A stretch of DNA of 62,972 nt, filler included, from Trichosphaerium sp. ATCC 40318 (taxonomy: Eukaryota; Protista; Tubulinea): NCBI GenBank assembly GCA_038496445.1. It is 5 parts of 5 records of this genome, joined end to end, with 100 filler letters (N's around TTAATTAATTAA, not from the genome) between each part and the next. Parts side by side here need not be neighbours in the genome. Positions count along the whole stretch, not along the records: positions 36,658 to 58,989 come from JALMLS010000327.1; 4 more parts are not named here. The stretch is one strand, 5' to 3'. The first letter of the stretch is position 1; each line of letters starts with the position of its first letter. The position numbers were made by a program, and so were the translations under genes. Of this stretch, positions 36,768 through 57,969 are shown one piece after another. The notes below the pieces were generated by a model, which saw only the letters and a program-made list of their open reading frames with translations, did no database searches and was not told the DNA's origin.

Positions 36768-37803
36768 CAGGGCTGAAACTCAGCTAGGCATTGCCTTAAA
36801 GAATGATGCATATTCCTAACATTTGGCATCAGATGGCAAAATCAAGGCATTTGCATTTGGTAATGCCCAATAAAATAAGGCATTTTTACAAAAAGGCAAT
36901 GCCTTCATCAAAAAGGCATTAATACCAGCATTTTTGGGCATCTTTTGGTATTGCATAAAATCAGGTAATGCCTTGTATTGCATTTTTTGGCATTGCATAA
37001 AATCAAGTAATGCCCTGTATTGCAAGTACTTTATGCCTTTATTATGCCTTATTTTTTTAAGCAATATATGCCTTGTATTTTAATTCATATATAAGGCATT
37101 GCCTATACTATATCATAGGACTGATCACATTAAGGAAGTGGTTTAAGGTAAGTAACAGTCAAACAACTTTTACACTTTTTTTTTCACATCACCTACTGAC
37201 GTTTTATATAGACAGGCATCTAGCGCTCTTAGTAATTCATGAAATTAGACGAAACCACCGCCAAACGAACCGCAGCACCCTATTTCACCTACAACAGTAG
37301 TAGGAGTGAACTCCGCGATATTTCCGGGACCGCGGAATTCTAACACTACAAGGTAAGTTTTTTTTTTTTTTTTTTCTACACCATCTCATATTTTCTTTAA
37401 GGTTTTTTCAAATGTGGACTTAGGAGTTTTGTGTATTGTATGTGTACTGTATTATAAAATAAATATTTGTGTTATTACCTGAAAATGCCCTGGTTTATTA
37501 GGCACTGTAGACTATGATAATGCCTTCTTTTTGCCTTCAAAATAAGGCATTGATGCATGAGTTATGCCCTAATTTGAAGGCATAATTCCTTAAAATATGC
37601 AAGCAAAACCATTGCAATCTTGTGTACCAGATGCAAGCATTTTTCATCAAATATAAGGCATTTTTGTAGCAAAAAATAAGGCATTGCCCTGTATTTGCCT
37701 TTTTGAATGAGGCAAAAACTAGGCATTTTTGTAAAAAATAAGGCATTTTTTGATGAAAATGCCTATGCATTGTCCAAAAATGCCTTGTTGAGTTTCAGCC
37801 CTG
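36768..37803. mobile_element. Non-autonomous TIR element A (MITE-like); mirror of 47161-48197
   Basis: TIR CAGGGCTGAAACTCA at both ends; many subterminal AGGCA/TGCCT motifs. Confidence 0.85.
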
Positions 37804-38544
37804 TGTGAGAATTGAATAACAGTATACTGGACACTTACACTAAGTTCAAAGGTATATCAGTTATTATCAAACAGATTGGGCACAATTGGTGGTTATGTGC
37901 AACTACAAGGCCAGTTACCATCACATACAAATGCACAAGGAGTTTCAAGAATGGATGGGCATCGAGTGGAACAGTTTATTTTATTGATTCACACAACTTC
38001 CCTTTGGTTTTAAATTGGCACCATGGCTCTTCACAAAGATCAACAGAGTTATGGCTGTGCATTTGTGTGTGTTAGAAGTAATTATTGTTATATGGTTTGA
38101 CGATTGGATAATAGGTAGATAAGGGCATTTACAACTGACCAAAAGAATTGAATTCCTTGAATTAATCATAGACACTGACAGAGCAGAACTATGCATATCT
38201 GAGTTGAAAATATTCAAGATGTGAGCCCTATTAAAAAACATTATTTGTTCTATTCATATACGAAATTTGGTGCATGTTAAAGATCTTGCAACTTGCATTG
38301 GCAAGATTATTGCTATCAAAGACACATTTTCCCCTGCACAAGTTTTTACTAGAAGTTTTTATAAAACAATTGCTCAAGTAGAAATTTATAACTTACCCTG
38401 GAAGGTTTTGGTGATCCCAGATCTGCAACTATTAAATGATGCCATATGGATATGAAAAGCCCTTCTTCAATGGAATGGCAAGGCAGTATGGTGAGTAAAG
38501 ACAATTCTACAGATCCAAACCAATGCATCTGAAGTAGCCTGGGC

Positions 38545-39276
38545 CAGGGCTGAAACTAAACAAGGCTTTGCCTTAAATACAAAGGCATTTTTGTAAAATC
38601 AGGCATGGATGGCAAAAATCAGGCATTCAAAAATGGCAATGTCTGATTTTGCAAAGGCAATGCCTGTCCTAGTTTTTTTATGCATTGCCAGCCTTAAATT
38701 TACAGGCACCAATTAGGCATTGGTTGTGTACACATTGTACATTAAGGATAGATTGGTTTAAGGTAAGTCTCCACCACACCAACACTTCCTAAACTTTTTT
38801 TTTCATTTACTACTGACGTTTTATATAGACGACGTCACCACGCGCTTAGTATTTTATGGATTCTAACAAAACCACCTTCATTCGAACCGCAGCACCCAAA
38901 TCCACCCACAACAGTAGTACAAGTACTTTAAACCATTTTTCCAGTCTGCGAAAATTATACCAATAATTTGTTAATTTTTTTTTTTAGCTAAAGGTTTTTT
39001 TTCACATGGAGGACATTGCAGTTTTTTGTGTACTGTACTTTAATAAACGAATCACTATTGTATGCCTATATAAAGCCTTGTTTAATGAGTATATGGTGCC
39101 TGGGTTATGCCCAAAAATTGAGGGCAAAAATGCCTTATTGTTGCAATAAAAATGAGGCATTATTGGACCAACAATGCAGGCTATTTTAAGACTAATTAGT
39201 GAACCAGTTGCTTGCTATTTGACCCAAATATGAGGCTTCAAAGCCCAACATTACAAGGCAATGCCTCATATTTGCC
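38545..39276. mobile_element. TIR element B, one end deleted; mirror ~45688-46419
   Basis: Starts CAGGGCTGAAACTAAA and matches the full copy at 48705-49546 but lacks one terminus. Confidence 0.8.
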
Positions 39277-40468
39277 AAACACAGTAGCATGGATGTGAAA
39301 AGGACCACGGGATCCTTACATTGACTTTGTGGTGAAAAAGATGTGGTTGTTGCTTTTAAGCACAAACATGACTTTGTTGCTGCTGGTGTGGATTCCATCA
39401 GCAGAAAACGAAGTGGATTGGCCAAGCAGGATTGTGGATCTTGAAGATTGGACAATAACAGACGAATTCTTCAATTTAGTGGAGGACGTTTTCACTCCAC
39501 ACATGATTGCTTGCTTTGCTTTGTTGATAAACAATTGACTAGATAGGTTCAACAGTTGTTGGGACCAACCTTGGGCAGAAGCAGTAAATGCAATGGCTCA
39601 AGATTGGATCAGAGAGAACAACTACACCTGTCCACCAGTAAGGTTATTGCAGGACATACTAAATCTGTTAGAAAAACAAAAAGCGACAGCTATGTTGATA
39701 GTTTCAAGATGGCCAGCACAGCTGTGGTGGCCAACTCTTTTACGTTTGACGATGGCAATGCTAAAGCTAGGCACAGGGATGGACGTATTCATCCAAGGGC
39801 CCAGTGGTTCTGTAGAACCCTTCAAGAATGTGCATTGGGTGTTTTTGGCGGTGCAGATAAATTAACAGATAATGCTATGAAGGATCTGTCACAAGCACTC
39901 TCTTTTCTGGTGATGGACATAGTGAGAACATGCATAAAAACTATGAAAAGAGAGTGGCGTTCTATTTTCTTCCAGCAAAACCTGAAACTGTAGCATTATA
40001 TATTTCGTCACATTTTTGTTTAGGTGCTACATTGGTGTCAAGAGTGGCATCGGCAGCGATCTCTTTAGTCCACAAGTCCGCTGAGTTTACACCGCTGTCA
40101 TGTACAGGTTGCTTTAATCTCCTTAAGTTAACAAAGGCTGGAATTGAGAAGGCTCAACTGAGAAGAAAGAAGATAGACCTGTTTGATCTAAAAGATTTGG
40201 TTTATTGGTGCAATAACGCGAAAGAGAAGTTTTCCGAGTTCGTGTACCACAAAAACGTGTGTATCATTGCGCTGTACATTTGTACAATGCAAAGACCAGA
40301 AATCACAAAAGTTAAGTTTTAAACCATGAACACGTGGTGGTTGAAAAAGACGGATCGGTTTCTGTCTTGATCGTTTGCACAAAAACTACACAGTTTGGAG
40401 CGGCGCATGAGATTCCTATAGAACCTATTAGGGACGCTGATACTAAAATTTGTCCTGTTAAATTGATT

Positions 40469-41040
40469 TAGAGATGGCAGAAATACCGGTCCGAACCGGT
40501 TCCGGACCGAAACGCAAAAGACCAGTCCGTAAACGGTCCAAACGGTCCGCTGTCAAAGGGAGTACCCTTGGAAAATCGGAAAAATAGCCGAAAAAGGAAT
40601 TTTTGTCAAAGGGTACTCCCTTGGATTTTTATTGGTCCAAACGGTCCCTGTCACAAAATCTCAGAACCCTCCATCTATTGACCTACTCACTGTGTGCATG
40701 CACATAAGGTGGCTGTACACTTTTTGTGGCAGGTTTGAATATCACACTTTTTTTTTTTTCATACCTAAAATAGTTTAGATACTATTATTTCGCGTAAGCA
40801 ATGCACTTGATAAGTTGCTTTACACGCACAAAGTGATAAAAAGATGTTTGGGTGAAAGTGTATGAAAGTATGTAACATCACATGATTTTGTCCAAATGTC
40901 AAAATAACGTCACCACAGGCACATTTTGACTCAAAAAAAGTAGCGGTTAGGCCAGTGTGACCTTGTTTTACCACGCTAAACTTAATTTTGTTAAAACGGG
41001 CTGATTGAGGGCTTTCAACCACTCTATGTGTAGAACTCTC
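40469..41040. mobile_element. Insertion interrupting the YR frame; mirror 43924-44495
   Basis: YR frame CPVKLI resumes as LNYLNITK after ~570 bp. Starts TAGAGATGG; has internal repeats AAACGGTCC x3 and TGTCAAAGGG..CCCTTGGA x2. Confidence 0.6.
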
Positions 41041-41409
41041 AATTTTAAATTATTTGAATATTACTAAACATCTTAAGGATGATGGACCGTTGTTTGTCAA
41101 AGTAAACAAGCGTGACGAGCAATTGGGACCCAGTGGCATCTCAGCAGTGTTTAGACAAGTGGTTAAGTTCGCTGGTAGTACCAAAAGAATCAGTGGGAGG
41201 TTGGCGAGAATAGCAGGAGCATCTTTGGCTGCGTATGCAGATATTCTGTGTGTGGTTTACATGGACATTGCACATTGGTCACTAAATGGAACCAGTGACA
41301 GGCATTACCTACGAAGAGGTCAGGCTGAGAAGCTACAAATATCCAAGCGTATGTTCTCTATATAAATAAAAGTTGTGATAGAGAGGCTCTCTACTCAAAA
41401 CACATAGTG

Positions 41410-41496
41410 GTTTGACTTATGTTTTAAAATTACTCTCGTTTATCATATTTTAATACAATTATACGAGTAATTTCCTAAAACTTAACAAGTCAAACA
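41410..41496. repeat. Imperfect hairpin after the YR stop, candidate DIRS internal complementary region
   Basis: GTTTGACTT..AAATTACTC pairs with GAGTAATTT..AAGTCAAAC; position matches the ICR of DIRS1-type elements. Confidence 0.45.
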
Positions 41497-42254
41497 GACT
41501 TAAGTGTTATTCTCTTTTACAACTTCGAATAACACAACTCTTCTATACACTTGGCTCTTGATGTCGGCTTCTGAACTCCCACCCTCCCACCACGTGATCT
41601 CTATATTTTTAATCACAGCATATGAGCTGTTGTGTCAATGTAAACGTCAGCGTGGGAATGCCGCAACAACTGGCTAGTTGTTTATGACGTCACTAGGACG
41701 GGTGCTTCCTGATATGACGAGAGAGGTTTTAGTGCTTGAAAATTGTGCACAGACATGGTATGTTGTTCGCCTTAATTCAGCGAACAAATATTGTGGAACT
41801 GTAAGATCGGATAGGCGTTAAGGTTTTATTCGAAGAGTGTATATCTTGTACAAAGTGAATTACACATTCTCTGTATACAACTTGGAAGTACATTAAGTGT
41901 GATTTGTTTAACGTTCAATGAATACAAAGTTTGTATTCTCCAACATTGTAGCCAAGTAAAAAGCTCGGTTGTTTTTTGTGATCTATATGATTCCGTTAGC
42001 AGCACTTACATAAATTATGTTCAAAACTACTGGCTAAAACTATTTAAGGTCAAATATTATCAAATAACAGCATCAATCTAAAGTTGTTACACCATCAGTC
42101 TCATCTGAAAGCAAAAACTTCTTATAACCTCTTATAACCATTTATTCTACTGTTGCTAAGTAACTTTCCAATCTCAAAAAGTAAGCAACTAAGTGAGGAC
42201 TTTAACTTTACCAACTCTCCCTTAGCAAATTACCCAAATTCAATATACATTATT

Positions 42255-42581: not shown

Positions 42582-43363
42582 TAACTTAAACATGTTCTAG
42601 CTGAGATTGACAGTAACAATAAAACTACAAAGTAATAAACTCCAACAATGTCCTCTATGCCATGACTAAGAAGAATACAGTCAATCAAAGAATAGAATGG
42701 AAACCATTTGGTAATGTATATTGAATTTGGGTAATTTGCTAAGGGAGAGTTGGTAAAGTTAAAGTCCTCACTTAGTTGCTTACTTTTTGAGATTGGAAAG
42801 TTACTTAGCAACAGTAGAATAAATGGTTATAAGAGGTTATAAGAAGTTTTTGCTTTCAGATGAGACTGATGGTGTAACAACTTTAGATTGATGCTGTTAT
42901 TTGATAATATTTGACCTTAAATAGTTTTAGCCAGTAGTTTTGAACATAATTTATGTAAGTGCTGCTAACGGAATCATATAGATCACAAAAAACAACCGAG
43001 CTTTTTACTTGGCTACAATGTTGGAGAATACAAACTTTGTATTCATTGAACGTTAAACAAATCACACTTAATGTACTTCCAAGTTGTATACAGAGAATGT
43101 GTAATTCACTTTGTACAAGATATACACTCTTCGAATAAAACCTTAACGCCTATCCGATCTTACAGTTCCACAATATTTGTTCGCTGAATTAAGGCGAACA
43201 ACATACCATGTCTGTGCACAATTTTCAAGCACTAAAACCTCTCTCGTCATATCAGGAAGCACCCGTCCTAGTGACGTCATAAACAACTAGCCAGTTGTTG
43301 CGGCATTCCCACGCTGACGTTTACATTGACACAACAGCTCATATGCTGTGATTAAAAATATAG

Positions 43364-46300
43364 AGATCACGTGGTGGGAGGGTGGGAGTTCAGAAGCCGA
43401 CATCAAGAGCCAAGTGTATAGAAGAGTTGTGTTATTCGAAGTTGTAAAAGAGAATAACACTTAAGTCTGTTTGACTTGTTAAGTTTTAGGAAATTACTCG
43501 TATAATTGTATTAAAATATGATAAACGAGAGTAATTTTAAAACATAAGTCAAACCACTATGTGTTTTGAGTAGAGAGCCTCTCTATCACAACTTTTATTT
43601 ATATAGAGAACATACGCTTGGATATTTGTAGCTTCTCAGCCTGACCTCTTCGTAGGTAATGCCTGTCACTGGTTCCATTTAGTGACCAATGTGCAATGTC
43701 CATGTAAACCACACACAGAATATCTGCATACGCAGCCAAAGATGCTCCTGCTATTCTCGCCAACCTCCCACTGATTCTTTTGGTACTACCAGCGAACTTA
43801 ACCACTTGTCTAAACACTGCTGAGATGCCACTGGGTCCCAATTGCTCGTCACGCTTGTTTACTTTGACAAACAACGGTCCATCATCCTTAAGATGTTTAG
43901 TAATATTCAAATAATTTAAAATTGAGAGTTCTACACATAGAGTGGTTGAAAGCCCTCAATCAGCCCGTTTTAACAAAATTAAGTTTAGCGTGGTAAAACA
44001 AGGTCACACTGGCCTAACCGCTACTTTTTTTGAGTCAAAATGTGCCTGTGGTGACGTTATTTTGACATTTGGACAAAATCATGTGATGTTACATACTTTC
44101 ATACACTTTCACCCAAACATCTTTTTATCACTTTGTGCGTGTAAAGCAACTTATCAAGTGCATTGCTTACGCGAAATAATAGTATCTAAACTATTTTAGG
44201 TATGAAAAAAAAAAAAGTGTGATATTCAAACCTGCCACAAAAAGTGTACAGCCACCTTATGTGCATGCACACAGTGAGTAGGTCAATAGATGGAGGGTTC
44301 TGAGATTTTGTGACAGGGACCGTTTGGACCAATAAAAATCCAAGGGAGTACCCTTTGACAAAAATTCCTTTTTCGGCTATTTTTCCGATTTTCCAAGGGT
44401 ACTCCCTTTGACAGCGGACCGTTTGGACCGTTTACGGACTGGTCTTTTGCGTTTCGGTCCGGAACCGGTTCGGACCGGTATTTCTGCCATCTCTAAATCA
44501 ATTTAACAGGACAAATTTTAGTATCAGCGTCCCTAATAGGTTCTATAGGAATCTCATGCGCCGCTCCAAACTGTGTAGTTTTTGTGCAAACGATCAAGAC
44601 AGAAACCGATCCGTCTTTTTCAACCACCACGTGTTCATGGTTTAAAACTTAACTTTTGTGATTTCTGGTCTTTGCATTGTACAAATGTACAGCGCAATGA
44701 TACACACGTTTTTGTGGTACACGAACTCGGAAAACTTCTCTTTCGCGTTATTGCACCAATAAACCAAATCTTTTAGATCAAACAGGTCTATCTTCTTTCT
44801 TCTCAGTTGAGCCTTCTCAATTCCAGCCTTTGTTAACTTAAGGAGATTAAAGCAACCTGTACATGACAGCGGTGTAAACTCAGCGGACTTGTGGACTAAA
44901 GAGATCGCTGCCGATGCCACTCTTGACACCAATGTAGCACCTAAACAAAAATGTGACGAAATATATAATGCTACAGTTTCAGGTTTTGCTGGAAGAAAAT
45001 AGAACGCCACTCTCTTTTCATAGTTTTTATGCATGTTCTCACTATGTCCATCACCAGAAAAGAGAGTGCTTGTGACAGATCCTTCATAGCATTATCTGTT
45101 AATTTATCTGCACCGCCAAAAACACCCAATGCACATTCTTGAAGGGTTCTACAGAACCACTGGGCCCTTGGATGAATACGTCCATCCCTGTGCCTAGCTT
45201 TAGCATTGCCATCGTCAAACGTAAAAGAGTTGGCCACCACAGCTGTGCTGGCCATCTTGAAACTATCAACATAGCTGTCGCTTTTTGTTTTTCTAACAGA
45301 TTTAGTATGTCCTGCAATAACCTTACTGGTGGACAGGTGTAGTTGTTCTCTCTGATCCAATCTTGAGCCATTGCATTTACTGCTTCTGCCCAAGGTTGGT
45401 CCCAACAACTGTTGAACCTATCTAGTCAATTGTTTATCAACAAAGCAAAGCAAGCAATCATGTGTGGAGTGAAAACGTCCTCCACTAAATTGAAGAATTC
45501 GTCTGTTATTGTCCAATCTTCAAGATCCACAATCCTGCTTGGCCAATCCACTTCGTTTTCTGCTGATGGAATCCACACCAGCAGCAACAAAGTCATGTTT
45601 GTGCTTAAAAGCAACAACCACATCTTTTTCACCACAAAGTCAATGTAAGGATCCCGTGGTCCTTTTCACATCCATGCTACTGTGTTTGGCAAATATGAGG
45701 CATTGCCTTGTAATGTTGGGCTTTGAAGCCTCATATTTGGGTCAAATAGCAAGCAACTGGTTCACTAATTAGTCTTAAAATAGCCTGCATTGTTGGTCCA
45801 ATAATGCCTCATTTTTATTGCAACAATAAGGCATTTTTGCCCTCAATTTTTGGGCATAACCCAGGCACCATATACTCATTAAACAAGGCTTTATATAGGC
45901 ATACAATAGTGATTCGTTTATTAAAGTACAGTACACAAAAAACTGCAATGTCCTCCATGTGAAAAAAAACCTTTAGCTAAAAAAAAAAATTAACAAATTA
46001 TTGGTATAATTTTCGCAGACTGGAAAAATGGTTTAAAGTACTTGTACTACTGTTGTGGGTGGATTTGGGTGCTGCGGTTCGAATGAAGGTGGTTTTGTTA
46101 GAATCCATAAAATACTAAGCGCGTGGTGACGTCGTCTATATAAAACGTCAGTAGTAAATGAAAAAAAAAGTTTAGGAAGTGTTGGTGTGGTGGAGACTTA
46201 CCTTAAACCAATCTATCCTTAATGTACAATGTGTACACAACCAATGCCTAATTGGTGCCTGTAAATTTAAGGCTGGCAATGCATAAAAAAACTAGGACAG

Positions 46301-47160
46301 GCATTGCCTTTGCAAAATCAGACATTGCCATTTTTGAATGCCTGATTTTTGCCATCCATGCCTGATTTTACAAAAATGCCTTTGTATTTAAGGCAAAGCC
46401 TTGTTTAGTTTCAGCCCTGGCCCAGGCTACTTCAGATGCATTGGTTTGGATCTGTAGAATTGTCTTTACTCACCATACTGCCTTGCCATTCCATTGAAGA
46501 AGGGCTTTTCATATCCATATGGCATCATTTAATAGTTGCAGATCTGGGATCACCAAAACCTTCCAGGGTAAGTTATAAATTTCTACTTGAGCAATTGTTT
46601 TATAAAAACTTCTAGTAAAAACTTGTGCAGGGGAAAATGTGTCTTTGATAGCAATAATCTTGCCAATGCAAGTTGCAAGATCTTTAACATGCACCAAATT
46701 TCGTATATGAATAGAACAAATAATGTTTTTTAATAGGGCTCACATCTTGAATATTTTCAACTCAGATATGCATAGTTCTGCTCTGTCAGTGTCTATGATT
46801 AATTCAAGGAATTCAATTCTTTTGGTCAGTTGTAAATGCCCTTATCTACCTATTATCCAATCGTCAAACCATATAACAATAATTACTTCTAACACACACA
46901 AATGCACAGCCATAACTCTGTTGATCTTTGTGAAGAGCCATGGTGCCAATTTAAAACCAAAGGGAAGTTGTGTGAATCAATAAAATAAACTGTTCCACTC
47001 GATGCCCATCCATTCTTGAAACTCCTTGTGCATTTGTATGTGATGGTAACTGGCCTTGTAGTTGCACATAACCACCAATTGTGCCCAATCTGTTTGATAA
47101 TAACTGATATACCTTTGAACTTAGTGTAAGTGTCCAGTATACTGTTATTCAATTCTCACA
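43364..47160 (-). mobile_element. Decayed DIRS1-type element copy 1, right palindrome arm
   Basis: Mirror of 37804-41600. Confidence 0.85.
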
Positions 47161-48197
47161 CAGGGCTGAAACTCAACAAGGCATTTTTGGACAATGCATA
47201 GGCATTTTCATCAAAAAATGCCTTATTTTTTACAAAAATGCCTAGTTTTTGCCTCATTCAAAAAGGCAAATACAGGGCAATGCCTTATTTTTTGCTACAA
47301 AAATGCCTTATATTTGATGAAAAATGCTTGCATCTGGTACACAAGATTGCAATGGTTTTGCTTGCATATTTTAAGGAATTATGCCTTCAAATTAGGGCAT
47401 AACTCATGCATCAATGCCTTATTTTGAAGGCAAAAAGAAGGCATTATCATAGTCTACAGTGCCTAATAAACCAGGGCATTTTCAGGTAATAACACAAATA
47501 TTTATTTTATAATACAGTACACATACAATACACAAAACTCCTAAGTCCACATTTGAAAAAACCTTAAAGAAAATATGAGATGGTGTAGAAAAAAAAAAAA
47601 AAAAAACTTACCTTGTAGTGTTAGAATTCCGCGGTCCCGGAAATATCGCGGAGTTCACTCCTACTACTGTTGTAGGTGAAATAGGGTGCTGCGGTTCGTT
47701 TGGCGGTGGTTTCGTCTAATTTCATGAATTACTAAGAGCGCTAGATGCCTGTCTATATAAAACGTCAGTAGGTGATGTGAAAAAAAAAGTGTAAAAGTTG
47801 TTTGACTGTTACTTACCTTAAACCACTTCCTTAATGTGATCAGTCCTATGATATAGTATAGGCAATGCCTTATATATGAATTAAAATACAAGGCATATAT
47901 TGCTTAAAAAAATAAGGCATAATAAAGGCATAAAGTACTTGCAATACAGGGCATTACTTGATTTTATGCAATGCCAAAAAATGCAATACAAGGCATTACC
48001 TGATTTTATGCAATACCAAAAGATGCCCAAAAATGCCTGGTATTAATGCCTTTTTGATGAAGGCATTGCCTTTTTGTAAAAATGCCTTATTTTATTGGGC
48101 ATTACCAAATGCAAATGCCTTGATTTTGCCATCTGATGCCAAATGTTAGGAATATGCATCATTCTTTAAGGCAATGCCTAGCTGAGTTTCAGCCCTG
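47161..48197. mobile_element. TIR element A at the junction of two tandem DIRS segments
   Basis: TIRs CAGGGCTGAAACTCA. Left flank is RT sequence and right flank is MT sequence of a second copy; no TSD. Confidence 0.85.
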
Positions 48198-50589: not shown

Positions 50590-51986
50590 AGTGTTAGTAA
50601 CACGTACATGGTTTGAGCTTGTCCTCAATTGTACTTTCAAGCATTGCTAAGATAAGTGCTTGAGTTGGTTGTTTTTTGGCTTCTAGCGCCCATATAACCT
50701 TTACAGTCGAAGAAAAGGTCTCAATGATATCATCAATGATTGTCCAGTGGTATGTAGTAAAGTCAGGGATGTTCTTTAAAAACTAAATGCATATCAGTGC
50801 TCTGAGCGTTTACTATAAAAAAAAGTACCTTTTTCTCCACTTCTTTCGTTAATACTTTTAACTCTTCTTGTACTGCTTTAAAGGAGGAGAGCATACTAAT
50901 TTTGGAGCTCCATCAAGTGACAACGTCACGTTTTACTTTTTTAGCTTTGTCACCACATACTTTAATCCATGCTAGATACATGTTGTTGGATGTATTTAAT
51001 CCAGTAATGAAGTGTCGAATGGGCACAAAAATAGAGTTTTCCAGATCCTCTAACACATGTGACATTGCATTGTTCAATTAATTGCTTTGAATGTTATTTT
51101 TTGTGTTAATTTAGTACGTACACATAAGTATACTTGATAGAAGCTACTTCACCACCATCTGTGACACCTGTGACAGGCATGACTTCATCACCCAACCACG
51201 ATTCACCTGAGCTATCAGCTTTGCCTTGACACTTGTGACCAATCTACCAATTGTTGTGGCTGTAATAAACATAAATTAAATAAATTAAGTAATGAACGCT
51301 ATGATGCACCTTTATGGTTACCTTCAACGTATGGTAACCCAATGAGAGCTCGTTTTGGTTTAAAATCATCTGTTAGCGAATGCAGTGTTATTGCACAATA
51401 ATAATCCTTTGTTTGACTACATTTCCAAAGATTGGCAGCAAATGTAGGGTATTTGGCTCTTTGTGTTTCTTTTTTTAAGTCACGCATTGTGCTCTTGTAC
51501 TTTTCGTCAATTATGCCTGTCATGGTATTTGGACAGGGTAATGTGTAGCCTGCAATCAGCTCCCTCATCAAGTCAACAAATTGAGGGTTTTGCACCAAGT
51601 TTAGTGGTAAGTTACCAACCACAATCAGCTTTGTCACGAGTTCATCAATGTGCTAAAAAAAGAAAGTAAATATAGGGAAGGAAGGAGTAAATGAGCATGT
51701 GCACCTTTTGTTTCTTTTTTGATACGGGTATAACACTTTTGTTACCAAAAAAGTCTTCCATTACTTGAGCTTGTTTAGTTTTTCCAAGCCATGGAAATTC
51801 GTCTTCTTTACTTTTGTATCCGTGATCTTTGCGCAAATGCTTGAGCTGGTTGGAAGTGGTGCCATGTTGAGGAGGAACAAATGTCTGACAAAACACACAT
51901 CTATTGTCTGTGTAGTACTTGTGAACGTTGGATCTTTGCTTGTAGTACCTTTTTTGGTGCTCGATGTTGCTTGCCTGAAGTTGCAT
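50590..51986 (-). pseudogene. hAT-family transposase remnant with BED zinc finger and introns
   Basis: CVFC..GTTSNQLKHLRKDH (BED); LPLNLVQNPQF..Y.LP; FAANLWK..YCAITLH (catalytic D replaced by N); RDVVT*WSS (degenerate TRWNS). Confidence 0.85.
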
Positions 51987-53470: not shown

Positions 53471-56400
53471 TTATTTTAATTGCTGGCTTAGTCTAGTATT
53501 GATTTCCGACAGTCTTCTGTGAACTTGTTTTAGTCTTTTGTTTTCTTCCAATAGCTTGTCATATGCGGTTGGTTGTTGTATTTGAGTCTCATTTGAATAG
53601 CTAGAGGCCCATAATTGCCTTTGCACAAAAGTAAGTAAGAAAGTGATTGATCGCACTTATTTTGTACCGCTTGTCACCAGTACTCTCTGATGTTGCAGAT
53701 GATTTCTTTGCTCTTTTCCTTTGTATTTGGGGCTCATTCGAATAGCTAGAGGCCCATAATTGTCTTTGCACAAAAGTAAGTAAGGAAAGTGATTGATCAC
53801 ACTTATTTTGTACCGATTGGAGACAAAGTTGTCACAATCATCAAAATCAGACAAGTCATCAGAACCAGATTCACCGATACCCCCTGATGCTGCAGGTGAT
53901 TGGATCTTGTTGGTTTTCTTGGACAGTTTCTTTACTCTTTTCCTGTTTTGGTTTTTTCGTTTAACTGCAATGATATAACGAGCAACAGTCTGTACATCTA
54001 AAATCACAACTTAGTCAACAAAGTACATCAATTGTAATCACTACCTTGAGCTACAACTAGCTCATCATACATTGCTTTATCTATTTTATCTTGCTCCAAC
54101 ACTTGTCCTTTGCTGTTTACCAATACATAGTGACTTTGATATCCAGCTTTAATTGGTTTACCAACAAGGTTATCTTCATCTTTAGGGTTTTCTGTAACCT
54201 ATCAATGCTTTGTAAGTAAACAAACCAGTAATGTGATTGGTTGCAGTTGTGTACAGGATATACATTCCCAGGCGTAACCAAACTAAGCACAAGTGTCTTC
54301 TTGTTGTCTTTACCAGATGTATCATATGAACAGGCATACTTAATGCTGCGCTATTTCAAAAAACAAGTCAGATTGGCAATGGTGACTTTTTAACCATACT
54401 GTAAAATAGATTCCTTGACCGTAGTATCCAGCATCCAACGAACTTAATACTCCAAATCCAGCCTTTACAATACTCCAAGCGGCTTTATGAGATGTTCCGT
54501 GAACCATTAATACAACTGGTAGCTGATTATTGGGTTAACAATGCACATGTATAAAATATACCTGATCAGAAACGTCATGGATACAGGCGCTGGATTTCGC
54601 TATGAGATTAAAAGCATGCTTTGCAACTCTTTTCTTGTGATCATTGTGGTCATCAGTTTTGTTCCATGTGTCTGGTAGGTCTCTAATTAAAACATTTCTG
54701 TTAAGAATTCACTTGTAGTAATAAAATAGTTCCTCAACGTATAAACGTACTGGTGTCTTTGCTTCAGCATGGTATTGTATGTGCCAAAGTTGTCGGTCAA
54801 TATATCATTGCAAACAAGATGAGCTTCTACAACATCATATTTATCATAGCCGTGCATCGTTGACATTTGTTGGTAAAGAAACTGTAGTTCTCTCTTGGCT
54901 ACAATATCATTTTTATTTGAATCAAGAAGATTCAGTGTTCTGAAGTGTGTTGCTTTTTTAATTGTACCCCTTTTTTGTTCACAAAAACAGTTAAACACGA
55001 GTTAATAAATACTTATGTTGCTACTCACTTGCTGTTAGATCTATCCCAGGTGTGGGCATAATGTAATCTTGGATTTAAGTCCCATGACGTCTCACTTTTT
55101 AACCCTTCAAGTTTTAGTGTGGTTGGACTAACAGTGCTTTTTTACCTGCTGTAGGGTTTTCAACTCTTTGATTTGGAGATATAGGATTAATAACGTGTTT
55201 GCAATCCTTGCATTCACATTTTTTGAAACTACCAATGTGCTTAGAGAGCTTCTACTCAAACTGTTAGCAAAAATAACTACAAAACAATTACGTGGTTTTG
55301 ATTATGTTGAGTTGCACAATAACTGCACAAATACAATCCATATTGAGAACACTCATAGCAAGCAAACGCTGTACAATGTTAATAAAAGAAATACCACTAA
55401 ACACATACTATCTTGCTTGGGTACTTTTTGAAGAGAATTTGTACACCATCCTTCTTTTATACACATTTCAATAACAGACCCAGTTTGTTTAGTATTACTC
55501 CACATATCATCTGGTAAGTCGGATAGAATTCCTTCCATCAGCTCTCCTTGCTGTAACCAAAAGCTCTAATGAACCAAAATAAGTTATTATATTACACATA
55601 CTTGTATTATGTGTTCATACCGAAGATTGTACAAATGTGCGATTATATGTACAAATCAAATGACAAATGCCTTTTTGCATTGCAAGTTTAAAATATGGAC
55701 GTGTTGGCTTTGTGTGATTAGTACTTAATAGTTGGTACAAAAGGAAGACATACCAAGTATTGCAACCATTTTGCAAGATTGAGTCGCCAGTGAGGTATCT
55801 CTTTCATATGAGCACATGATAACCATAGTTCACAACTTTGTTGATCATTTGGAAACAGTGTCAAAAGAGTTTCAAACACATTGATGAACGCAGGCTCATC
55901 AGCAACCACCTGTGTTAGTATTTTGATTAAAGCCTCTTTCCATTCAATTGAAATTAATAAAATGTCTATAGTTTGTTTCAACAATGTTTTCAAAACTGGG
56001 TTGTGCCCATTTTTTGCTAATATGAATTTAATGTCTTCAAATCAAGTTTATTTGTATAAATACCTGCACAAATTAAAGCAGTACTTCCATTGTCTCGTTT
56101 GGCTTCAATGTTGGCTCCTGATTCAAGTAATACTTTTATCACATTATTGTGTCCATTAAAGGCTACCAATTAAGAGTATATGTGAGTAACAGATGTTGTT
56201 ATGGTTAAACACAATCATACCTGCATCAATCAAAGCAGTACTTTCATCTTTTTCTTTGGCTTCAATATTGGCTCCTGATTCAAGTAATACTTTTATCACA
56301 TTATCGTGTCCATTATATGCTACCAATTAAAGAGTATGTGAGTAACAGATGTTGTTATGGTTAAGCACTATCATACCTGCATTAATCAAAGCAGTGATTC

Positions 56401-57969
56401 CATTTTTTTCTTTGGCTTCAATGTTGGCTCCTGATTCAAGTAATACTTTTATCACATTATCATGTCCATTATATGCTACCAATTAAAAAGTATGTGAGTA
56501 ACAGATGTTGTTATGGTTAAGCACTATCATACCTGCATCAATCAAAGCAGTATGTCCATTTTTTTCTTTGGCTTCAATGTTGGCTCCTGATTCAAGTAAT
56601 ACTTTTATCACATTATCATGTCCTTTATATGCTACCAATTAAAGAGTATGTGAGTAACAGATGTTGTTATGGTTAAGCACTATCATACCTGCGCCAATTA
56701 AAGCAGTGATTCCATTGTCTCGTTTGGCTTCAATGTTGGCTCCTGATTCAAGTAATACTTTTATCACATTATCGTGTCCATTATATGCTACCAATTAAAG
56801 AGTATGTGAGTAACAGATGTTGTTATGGTTAAGCACTATCATACCTGCATTAATCAAAGCAGTGCTTCCATTTTTTTCTTTGGCTTCAATGTTGGCTCCT
56901 GATTCAAGTAATACTTTTATCACATTATTGTGTCCATTATATGCTACCAATTAAAAAGTATGTGAGTAACAGATGTTGTTATTAAACACAATCATACCTG
57001 CATCAATCAAAGCAGTACTTCCATTTTTTTCTTTGGCTTCAATATTGGCTCCTGATTCAAGTAATACTTTTATCACATTATCATGTCCATTATATGCTAC
57101 CAATTAAAGAGTATGTGAGTAACAGATGCTGTTATAGTTAAACACTATCATACCTGCGCTAATTAAAGCAGTGATTCCATCTTTTTCTTTGGCTTCAATG
57201 TTGGCTCCTGATTCAAGTAATACTTTTATCACATTATCATGTCCTTGAATGGCTACCAATTAAAGAGTATGTGAGTAACAGATGTTGTTATGGTTAAGCA
57301 CTATCATACCTGCATTAATCAAAGCAGTGCTTCCATTTTTTTCTTTGGCTTCAATGTTGGCTCCTGATTCAAGTAATACTTTTATCACATTATCATGTCC
57401 ATTATATGCTACCAATTAAAGAGTATGTGAGTAACAGATGATGTTATATTTAAACACTATCATACCTGCACCAAGTAAAGCTGTATAGCCATTATTATTT
57501 TTTGCTTCAATGTTCAATCTTGATTGTATGCATAACATTACAATAACATGGAGATTGTTGCAAGCTACAAATTGGGTTGATACTTAAGTGTTGGTAAATA
57601 CAAACCTGAATAGAATAGAATGTCGTTTGCTATGTCAAGAGTATGTAGACTTTGTATCAGCACATCACCTAAAGGAAAAGTGTTTTTATTATAAGAGAAC
57701 GTGTTTAAACCAAAGGAGGTACATGTAGTAATATTGGGGTATTTGCATTGAAGCTGCGCCAATTCGGCTATTGAAGATTTTTAATAAACGGAGAGGTAGA
57801 TCAAAGATTCGTTTCTATTACCTTTTAATTCTGATTCTTCGATGCTATGTGGCTCTGCCATGAAGCGTTGTAACCAGTGTTGATTGTATGGTAAAATGGT
57901 TTTAAGTTTCGCCGACGGTTCATAGAATTGTTTGTGTTCCGGCTCGTGTACATTGTTTGCGTTCAACAT
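53471..57969 (-). CDS. Ankyrin-repeat array + UBR-box-like zinc finger + PARP-type ADP-ribosyltransferase (H-Y-E) + coiled coil; many exons, frame intact in manual splicing
   Basis: N-cap, 9 x A(YN)GHDNVIKVLLESGANIEAK(EKNGS)TALI(D)A, C-cap. Then CTN..Q..FACYECS..LCSYCATQHNQNH..CECKDC. Then LMVHGTS..IVKAGF..GYYGQGIYFTRSIKYACSY..PGNVY..YQSHY..MYDELVVAQDVQTVARYII. TAA at 53471-53473. Confidence 0.85.
56064..57564 (-). repeat. Tandem array of ~156-bp units, each a 99-nt ankyrin exon plus a ~57-nt intron
   Basis: Exons at 56064, 56221, 56377, 56533, 56689, 56845, 56998, 57154 and 57310, plus N-cap 57466. Introns read GTATGAT..TACTCAC..TTGGTAG. Confidence 0.95.

Follow-up and report, generated by a model that had tools for sequence, protein, structure and literature searches.

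A 62,972-nt stretch of the genome of Trichosphaerium sp. ATCC 40318 (assembly GCA_038496445.1; five parts joined end to end, hereafter the window) contains, at about 53.47-57.97 kb on the minus strand, an expressed and spliced eukaryotic gene that carries an array of nine near-identical ankyrin repeats, each encoded by an exon of its own (E1 to E9, 56064-57408). The ankyrin units are stacked in one solenoid with caps at both ends, and the amino-acid replacements among them pile up at the beta-turn and inner-helix positions which, judging from the register of homologous structures, line the ankyrin binding groove. These groove positions are likely to change faster than neutral proxies. We give about an even chance to the interpretation that the array is a target-recognition module whose groove has been diversified repeat by repeat and which is linked to a C-terminal PARP-like enzyme.

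Array anatomy and variable positions

Reading of the reverse complement of 55.9-57.7 kb for splice sites and frame gave nine 99-nt exons, all in phase 1-1 and each encoding one 33-aa ankyrin unit, which are bordered by the acceptor TTGGTAG/ and the donor GCAG/GT (GCAG/GTATGA; slashes mark exon borders) and spaced at 156 nt. In gene order, and with their variable residues, these are E1 (57310-57408, AYN..EKNGS.N), E2 (57154-57252, AIQ..EKDGI.S), E3 (56998-57096, AYN..EKNGS.D), E4 (56845-56943, AYN..EKNGS.N), E5 (56689-56787, AYN..RDNGI.G), E6 (56533-56631, AYK..EKNGH.D), E7 (56377-56475, AYN..EKNGI.N), E8 (56221-56319, AYN..EKDES.D) and E9 (56064-56162, AFN..RDNGS.C). Translation of the exons reproduced, letter for letter and in gene order, the nine variable strings listed in an initial annotation of this DNA. 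Its claim that the scaffold is invariant in protein and nearly so in DNA also held, as NVIKVLLESGANIEAK is constant in 9 of 9 units and the 48 nt encoding it include a single variable site (AAC/AAT). That annotation had missed the D/N alternation right after GH (ankyrin position 17) and four purely synonymous variable sites. A 32-nt core occurs nine times without mismatch, once per unit (chance expectation 0), and mean protein identity between repeats is 87.6% (range 75.8-97.0%, over 9 × 33 = 297 aa).

By homology the units are genuine ankyrin repeats of the Pfam clan Ank: a single unit matches Ank_4 with E = 3.5e-5 and 24.4 bits, above the 22.7-bit cut-off, and phmmer with one unit against the PDB gave alignments to ankyrin-1/2 (E = 2e-47) and to constructs of designed ankyrin repeat proteins (DARPins; E ~1e-36), in register over GH..V..LL..GA......G.T.L. 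Tandem Repeats Finder reported a single array at 56060-57514 (period 156, 9.3 copies, 91% matches) together with a weak 3-unit (465-nt) period. This array is slightly longer than that of the nine exons, beginning inside the preceding exon 0 (57466-57564), a 99-nt exon encoding the diverged ankyrin repeat ACNNLHVIVMLCIQSRLNIEAKNNNGYTALLGA, on which Ank_4 is weak (E = 0.029). Against the array consensus, the first 50 nt of exon 0 are 46% identical and the remaining 49 nt 73%; the 3′ half, from about 57514 on, forms a degenerate first unit of the tandem array and accounts for the extra 0.3 copy.

The eight introns between the array exons measure 54-58 nt and are ~95% identical, four of the eight being identical to each other. 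The intron before E1 (57409-57465, with an RNA joint ending at 57466) differs from intron 1 at 4 of 57 nt and is already part of the repeated unit, and the 47-nt intron after E9 (56017-56063) is unrelated to the array introns. The array introns carry a branch-site-like TACTCAC ~20 nt ahead of the acceptor and a 5′ GTATG complementary to CATAC ~35 nt downstream; their variable sites avoid both TACTCAC and the GTATG/CATAC pairing.

To place the variation on the ankyrin fold, the phmmer alignments to PDB ankyrins and DARPins were used as register, which makes exon codon 1 consensus ankyrin position 12. Amino acids vary at 9 of the 33 positions of the unit: position 1 (E, R), 2 (K, D), 3 (N, D), 4 (G, E), 5 (S, I, H), 10 (five residues, N, S, D, G and C), 13 (Y, I, F), 14 (N, Q, K) and 17 (D, N). 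At position 33 all units have Lys. In the original DARPin design the randomised positions are 2, 3, 5, 13, 14 and 33. DARPin libraries randomise six positions, marked X in the consensus repeat (PMC9611651), and the ANK-N5C library randomises 2, 3, 5, 10, 13 and 33, a continuous binding surface formed by the beta-turn and helix 1 (PMC4308713). The union of both designs comprises seven positions (2, 3, 5, 10, 13, 14 and 33), referred to as library positions in the rest of the paper. Six of the nine variable positions fall among them (hypergeometric P = 4.8e-4), and with each library alone five of six positions are variable (P = 0.0028). The concentration of variation on the binding surface and its overlap with the DARPin positions, both noted in the initial annotation, are therefore supported by this register.

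RNA evidence came from contigs of four public runs (short-word assemblies) aligned on 53.4-58.2 kb, in which a joint whose skipped part reads CT...AC on the plus strand corresponds to a GT-AG intron on the minus strand. For exon 0, E1, E6 and E9, joints end precisely on the predicted final base (57466, 57310, 56533 and 56064), and difference-free contig pieces cover 57154-57244 in the array and 57466-57564, exactly the bases of exon 0. In the array the joints resume 4-8 nt inside the predicted exon starts, and the letters replaced there recode codons 1-3 as AIN, AIK and ALG in array-type exons and as ALF before the cap exon (contigs from three organisms). Given these differences, transcripts of paralogues, alleles or sister species vary at the same codons as the array units. 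Elsewhere in the gene, many contigs agree with one another at only 90-99%, indicating that it belongs to an expressed multi-copy family. For a single gene the term 'natural library', used in the initial annotation, overreaches, though the RNA contigs show more variants at the same codons.

Substitution rates and mosaic variation

Divergence between the units runs in an unusual direction, the exons differing more than the introns (p-distance 0.087 versus 0.048). Counted as minimum changes, 13 nonsynonymous changes fall at the seven library codons (~18.5 sites) and 4 at the other codons (~59 sites), next to 6 synonymous (21.7 sites) and 7 intronic changes (54 sites) that serve as neutral proxies; a binomial event test against synonymous plus intron sites gave P = 5e-4. 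In pairwise Nei-Gojobori comparisons, the nonsynonymous difference (pN) at the DARPin codons was 0.205 compared to a whole-exon synonymous difference (pS) of 0.128, and pN/pS outside the DARPin codons was 0.37. A fixed-sites codon likelihood model (MG94) with shared branch lengths yielded an omega of 3.2 at library codons (likelihood-ratio test (LRT) 8.2, P = 0.004) and of 0.18-0.30 elsewhere. With the introns added as neutral sites, omega at library codons was 5.3 (LRT 21.8), and on star, positional-caterpillar and period-3 trees it was 3.1-3.7 (P = 0.0005-0.0025). The residues of the fold are under purifying selection (omega ~0.2).

The variation is also mosaic. All of the recurring block combinations described in the initial annotation are present, RD being found with I (E5) and S (E9), and I with EKN (E7), EKD (E2) and RDN (E5). 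Among 190 informative site pairs, 96 are incompatible, and the Hudson-Kaplan Rmin is 6 in the 157-column unit, with five of these falling within the exon. Sawyer's sum of squared concordant fragments (SSCF) lay above all 3000 permutations (P < 0.001), a statistic that is inflated by adjacent multi-base differences, and the pairwise homoplasy index (PHI) test on the array units detected no significant recombination signal (P = 0.12-0.44). The combinations of EK/RD with S/I and of N/D with S/I would require breakpoints 6-9 nt apart; the changes involved in such close four-gamete violations are single-step ones (AGC/ATC, AAT/GAT), capable of recurring. Because the PHI test is non-significant and some breakpoints would lie this close together, crossing-over explains the pattern no better than recurrent mutation or short patches. 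The mosaic pattern is real, as the incompatible pairs and Rmin indicate, but the sub-exon recombination that had been proposed to explain it is not shown; crossing-over, conversion of short patches or recurrent mutation under selection may have produced it.

The gene around the array

All parts of the gene lie on the minus strand. Exon 1 (57822-57969), the putative first coding exon, starts at the ATG at 57969, the first one past an in-frame stop, and comprises 49 codons plus 1 nt without a recognised domain before the donor AAAAG/GTAATAG. A loose end of RNA at 57769 continues into the sequence of 57824-57832, as expected if 57768-57821 is a 54-nt intron. The small coding exon 2 (57723-57767, 45 nt) was predicted from splice motifs and the open frame and has an X6 RNA depth of ~50, and the 63-nt exon 3 (57606-57668), placed by splice motifs and frame and covered by an RNA contig piece at 57563-57668, encodes the helical N-cap-like segment DVLIQSLHTLDIANDILFYS. 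About 85 residues stand before the first repeat, and there are roughly eleven stacked ankyrin repeats in total, nine of them from the 156-bp unit.

Downstream of the array, a 263-nt exon (55754-56016) opens with the C-terminal capping half-repeat AKNGHNPVLKTLL and then encodes an orphan helical linker of ~75 aa; it was placed by frame and splice sites and is bounded by the RNA joint 55707/55754, with CT..AC ends. Two exons without a recognised domain follow (55621-55707 and 55409-55565), separated by a 55-nt intron, with open frames and RNA joints 55565/55621 and 55368/55409 (CT..AC ends). In the stretch at 55029-55368 several exon paths are possible: canonical in-frame GT-AG paths exist and the RNA contigs fit imperfectly. 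Contigs from two runs join 55431/55340, 55305/55218 and 55195/55106, whose ends are non-GT-AG at the locus and which keep the frame; another contig uses the canonical 55409/55368 intron. The odd joints in 55106-55431 most likely come from a paralogue with another exon structure. At 55290-55368, between the linker and the PARP-like domain, TFACYECSQYGLYLCSYCATQHNQNH displays a CxxC...CxxC...HxxxH pattern and resembles a small zinc-binding module. Introns supported by RNA joints, 39-68 nt long, lie at 54351-54399, 54523-54561, 54683-54750, about 54970-55028, 55369-55408, 55566-55620 and 55708-55753. Such introns, of the GT-AG type and removed in RNA, rule out a bacterial origin of the gene, and their size rules out that the short introns of the array impose mutually exclusive splicing.

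Five exons (54751-54969, 54562-54682, 54400-54522, 54255-54350 and 54045-54198), connected in this region by RNA joints 54968/55028, 54682/54751, 54522/54562 and 54350/54400 (CT..AC), appear to encode a PARP-like domain with the motifs HGT, GQGIYFT, SIKYA and YDELVV...RYIIAV. In the translated exons HGT, SIKYA and YDELVV occur in the expected H-Y-E order; this triad was read by eye and would align with H862, Y896 and E988 of PARP1. Pfam PARP (PF00644) matches the 41-aa HGT...GQGIYFT exon only, with E = 0.0017 and 18.3 bits, under the 26.7-bit cut-off, over profile positions 51-90 of 199. The remaining PARP-like exons, each scanned singly, had no Pfam match, and the HGT-GIYF exon had no PARP match by phmmer against the PDB.

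The C-terminal tail (53471-53997), read from translation and a list of open reading frames (ORFs), consists of a basic/acidic low-complexity exon, two RQLWASSYSNE exons and a coiled-coil-like end with the stop codon. It includes a second tandem duplication, at 53575-53815, of two units with a near-identical 50-nt intron (GTACAAAATAAGTG.GATCAATCAC...TGCAAAG) and the exon start RQLWASSYSNE(P/T)QIQ; the RNA joint 53763/53814 (CT..AC ends) confirms the first of the two introns.

Elsewhere in the window, 36928-42252 and 42712-48036 are inverted copies of each other, 5,325 nt long and 100% complementary, with 459 nt between them. This palindrome carries ORFs with a tyrosine-recombinase-like C-terminus (RISGRLARIAGASLAAY...HWSLNGTSDRHYLRR), which suggests a DIRS- or Crypton-like element; either the insertion is genuine or the assembly has folded back on itself. 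More partial copies of its sequence, 97-99% identical, lie at 48.0-50.2 kb. Just downstream of the ankyrin gene, the minus strand carries at 51299-51986 a pair of neighbouring ORFs, of 112 and 113 aa, that resemble by eye the BED-finger/N-terminal part of hAT-type transposases.

Competing explanations and known systems

The interpretation that we favour holds that a 156-bp minisatellite-like unit, made of a 99-nt phase-1 exon and a 54-58-nt intron, would have been multiplied by tandem duplication or unequal exchange, in an expansion that was recent since the introns are still ~95% identical. The groove would have been diversified repeat by repeat through point changes and short multi-nucleotide patches, recurring or exchanged between units, and the gain, loss or exchange of a frame-neutral exon plus intron would do no harm and could produce new surfaces quickly. 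We hypothesize that the putative groove binds protein targets and that, by a tankyrase-like logic, the array would bring these to the PARP-like ADP-ribosyltransferase for modification; the multi-copy expressed family may be engaged in conflict or non-self recognition. It seems unlikely, though worth stating, that a lineage-specific family of ankyrin-ADP-ribosyltransferases of this kind would constitute a germline-encoded recognition repertoire of a marine eukaryote, renewed by unit duplication, patch exchange and perhaps exon skipping, in which bound non-self proteins would be ADP-ribosylated and no nucleotide-binding oligomerisation domain (NOD) would take part.

Several results weigh against the favoured interpretation. 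The library positions are the highest-entropy positions of natural ankyrin repeats in general (PMC4308713), so that their enrichment alone shows weak constraint, not selection. Pairwise pN/pS is 0.59 for the whole exon and 0.79 inside the six DARPin codons taken alone, and the binomial event test against synonymous sites alone is borderline (P = 0.04-0.06). Much of the rate signal comes from codons differing by two or three bases (TAT AAT to ATT CAA in E2, GAA AAA to CGA GAC in E5 and E9, and AGT to CAT); with these multi-nucleotide variants masked, omega at library codons is ~2 and not significant (P = 0.14-0.28). Synonymous changes are linked to these clusters, GCC standing beside ATT or TTT and TTA beside AGC, GGC or TGT, and because they travel together the clusters are possibly short imported patches; variants such as GCC ATT CAA (E2) and CGA GAC (E5 and E9) may be older than their flanks and inflate omega. 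No single tree is an appropriate model for a mosaic array, the short introns may be constrained themselves, and the sample consists of nine 33-codon units of one gene only. The initial annotation had proposed diversifying selection, to be checked by site-wise dN/dS. By site class omega does exceed 1 at library codons (3.1-5.3), but its significance is lost after masking and the pairwise whole-exon ratio stays below 1; we regard diversifying selection at these codons as the likelier explanation, but nine units do not establish it.

The remaining points on the same side concern the rest of the gene. The C-terminal domain is called PARP-like since only one exon reaches Pfam PARP, below the cut-off, and the canonical path through 55.03-55.37 kb is not RNA-confirmed on the locus. 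Searches for outside relatives were negative: phmmer with the 87-aa linker exon against 1.84 billion representatives found no true relative, a word-index search with the ORF of one array unit returned no candidate relative, a degenerate DNA pattern for VIKVLLESGANIEAK had no match in metagenome, prokaryote-genome or viral contigs, and none of 155 pattern matches in a protein-guided metagenome scan with the linker was confirmed. The sole phmmer match of the linker exon was rejected as spurious, being a wrong-frame low-complexity repeat protein. The linker also has no Pfam match, and an ESM-atlas feature search with it yielded only sub-threshold bacterial and viral clusters.

Most of the points on rates would also fit an array of young tandem exon copies under relaxed constraint, with a surface that drifts neutrally and an apparent excess due to a few multi-nucleotide events and constrained introns. 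The whole-exon pN/pS, the borderline event test, the non-significant omega after masking and the low conservation of library positions in natural ankyrins (PMC4308713) all favour this explanation, which we consider possible but on balance doubtful: even after masking the point estimate of omega is ~2, and it is otherwise 3.1-5.3 on four trees; position 10 holds five residues among nine young copies; and exon divergence exceeds intron divergence. An improbable alternative is a patchwork without selection for novelty, in which gene conversion homogenised the scaffold and introns of two or more old, diverged repeat types, from this gene or from paralogues, while old divergence survived in short unconverted patches. 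The block variants with their linked synonymous changes, the incompatible site pairs with Rmin and the Sawyer statistic, the weak 465-nt period and the many paralogous transcripts are what such a patchwork would leave behind, but the PHI test and the breakpoints 6-9 nt apart that several incompatibilities demand speak against it, and neutral conversion should erase surface codons along with their flanks, so that their persisting difference would still imply selection for diversity.

It is very unlikely that the exons form a set of alternative-splicing cassettes generating isoform diversity by exon skipping or mutually exclusive choice, with only some of the nine exons in any one mRNA. Any subset of 99-nt phase 1-1 exons with identical splice sites would keep the frame, brown-algal arrays of leucine-rich repeat (LRR) exons are alternatively spliced (PMC11378527), and some RNA contigs connect ends of exons that are not neighbours, for example 57466 with 56627. 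These short-word contigs, however, carry other letters at the joint and are probably paralogous or chimeric, and introns of 57 nt are ordinary in a gene whose other introns measure 39-68 nt. A mis-assembled repeat or a dead copy is likewise highly improbable. Such doubt arises from the unconfirmed path at 55.03-55.37 kb and, to some extent, from the perfect 5.3-kb palindrome elsewhere in the same piece; against it stand nine open exons with intact GT-AG sites and an invariant scaffold, the difference-free RNA pieces on the array and exon 0, and the in-frame canonical paths through 55.03-55.37 kb.

Among known systems, the array is closest in pattern to recognition proteins built from near-identical repeats. 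In the highly internally conserved (HIC) arrays of fungal NOD-like receptors (NLRs), amino-acid identity between repeats is 85% or more over a length of 100 aa or more (Dyrka et al. 2014, PMC4986451), and the array described here, with a mean of 87.6% over 297 aa, falls within this range; only ~0.8% of metazoan ankyrin, tetratricopeptide (TPR) and WD repeats are this conserved (Dyrka et al., PMC4986451). Fungal ankyrin, TPR and WD arrays such as those of Podospora HNWD/het-e (PMC4986451) share with it an identity of at least 85% and hypervariable sites on the concave ankyrin face, and we count their concerted evolution and repeat shuffling as a further likeness; polymorphism in repeat number is documented in Podospora (PMC4986451). 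However, fungal arrays follow a NACHT or NB-ARC domain, neither of which turned up when the N-terminal exon, the linker and the exons downstream were scanned with Pfam, and the partner here is PARP-like; membership in the NLR/STAND proteins was rejected for this reason. Also unlike fungal NLR arrays, every repeat here has its own exon with a co-duplicated intron.

This last feature recalls the LRR (ROCO) and TPR (NB-ARC) arrays of brown algae (Zambounis 2012, as cited in PMC11378527). There, each repeat has its own exon of fixed length and symmetric intron phase, exons were duplicated or shuffled in tandem, and positively selected sites lie on the concave face of candidate recognition receptors. 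In that account the brown-algal LRR exons are 72 nt long and in phase 2, whereas ours encode ankyrin repeats in 99 nt and phase 1; the partner domains differ, alternative splicing is shown in the algae and not here, and the array introns are tiny (54-58 nt) and nearly identical. The array has the exon-per-repeat layout of these receptors, an analogy of architecture and not homology. Tankyrase and other ankyrin-PARP proteins, a fusion that arose several times in eukaryotes (PMC4245714), show the same order of an N-terminal target-binding ankyrin array and a C-terminal PARP-type domain, a parallel that supports the proposed sequence of binding and then ADP-ribosylating a target. Tankyrase, in contrast, has five distinct ankyrin repeat clusters in place of near-identical repeats with an orphan linker, and the gene cannot be assigned to it, as Pfam scans of the exons between array and PARP-like domain gave no SAM match (a 72-aa exon returned only noise, DUF3196 and UBA at E > 0.06).

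Designed libraries (DARPin, ANK-N5C) have the same consensus-like constant scaffold, and variation here occupies nearly the same positions (2, 3, 5, 10, 13 and 14). Unlike in the designs, position 33 is constant, positions 1, 4 and 17 vary, there are 2-5 residues per position, and Gly and Cys, which the designed libraries exclude, occur at variable positions. C2H2 zinc-finger minisatellites of the PRDM9 type (PMC8925151) likewise consist of near-identical coding units evolving in concert with replacements at ligand-contact residues, but that array lies within one exon and binds DNA, whereas the unit here includes an intron and encodes an ankyrin fold. A few hypervariable binding positions in otherwise near-identical repeats are the mark of rapidly evolving recognition proteins, among them fungal NLRs, brown-algal ROCO and NB-TPR proteins and PRDM9. 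The hypervariable groove is known from immune-type receptors of fungi and brown algae, and what appears to be new is its connection to a predicted PARP-like enzyme domain. An exon-per-repeat ankyrin array with mini-introns and such an enzyme instead of a NOD would widen the range of these systems and provide, in compact form, a natural analogue of DARPin libraries. Should the family prove large and polymorphic, it would be a candidate system for innate recognition or conflict in a marine lineage that has been little studied; otherwise it would still offer a clean case of exon-level minisatellites building repeat proteins.

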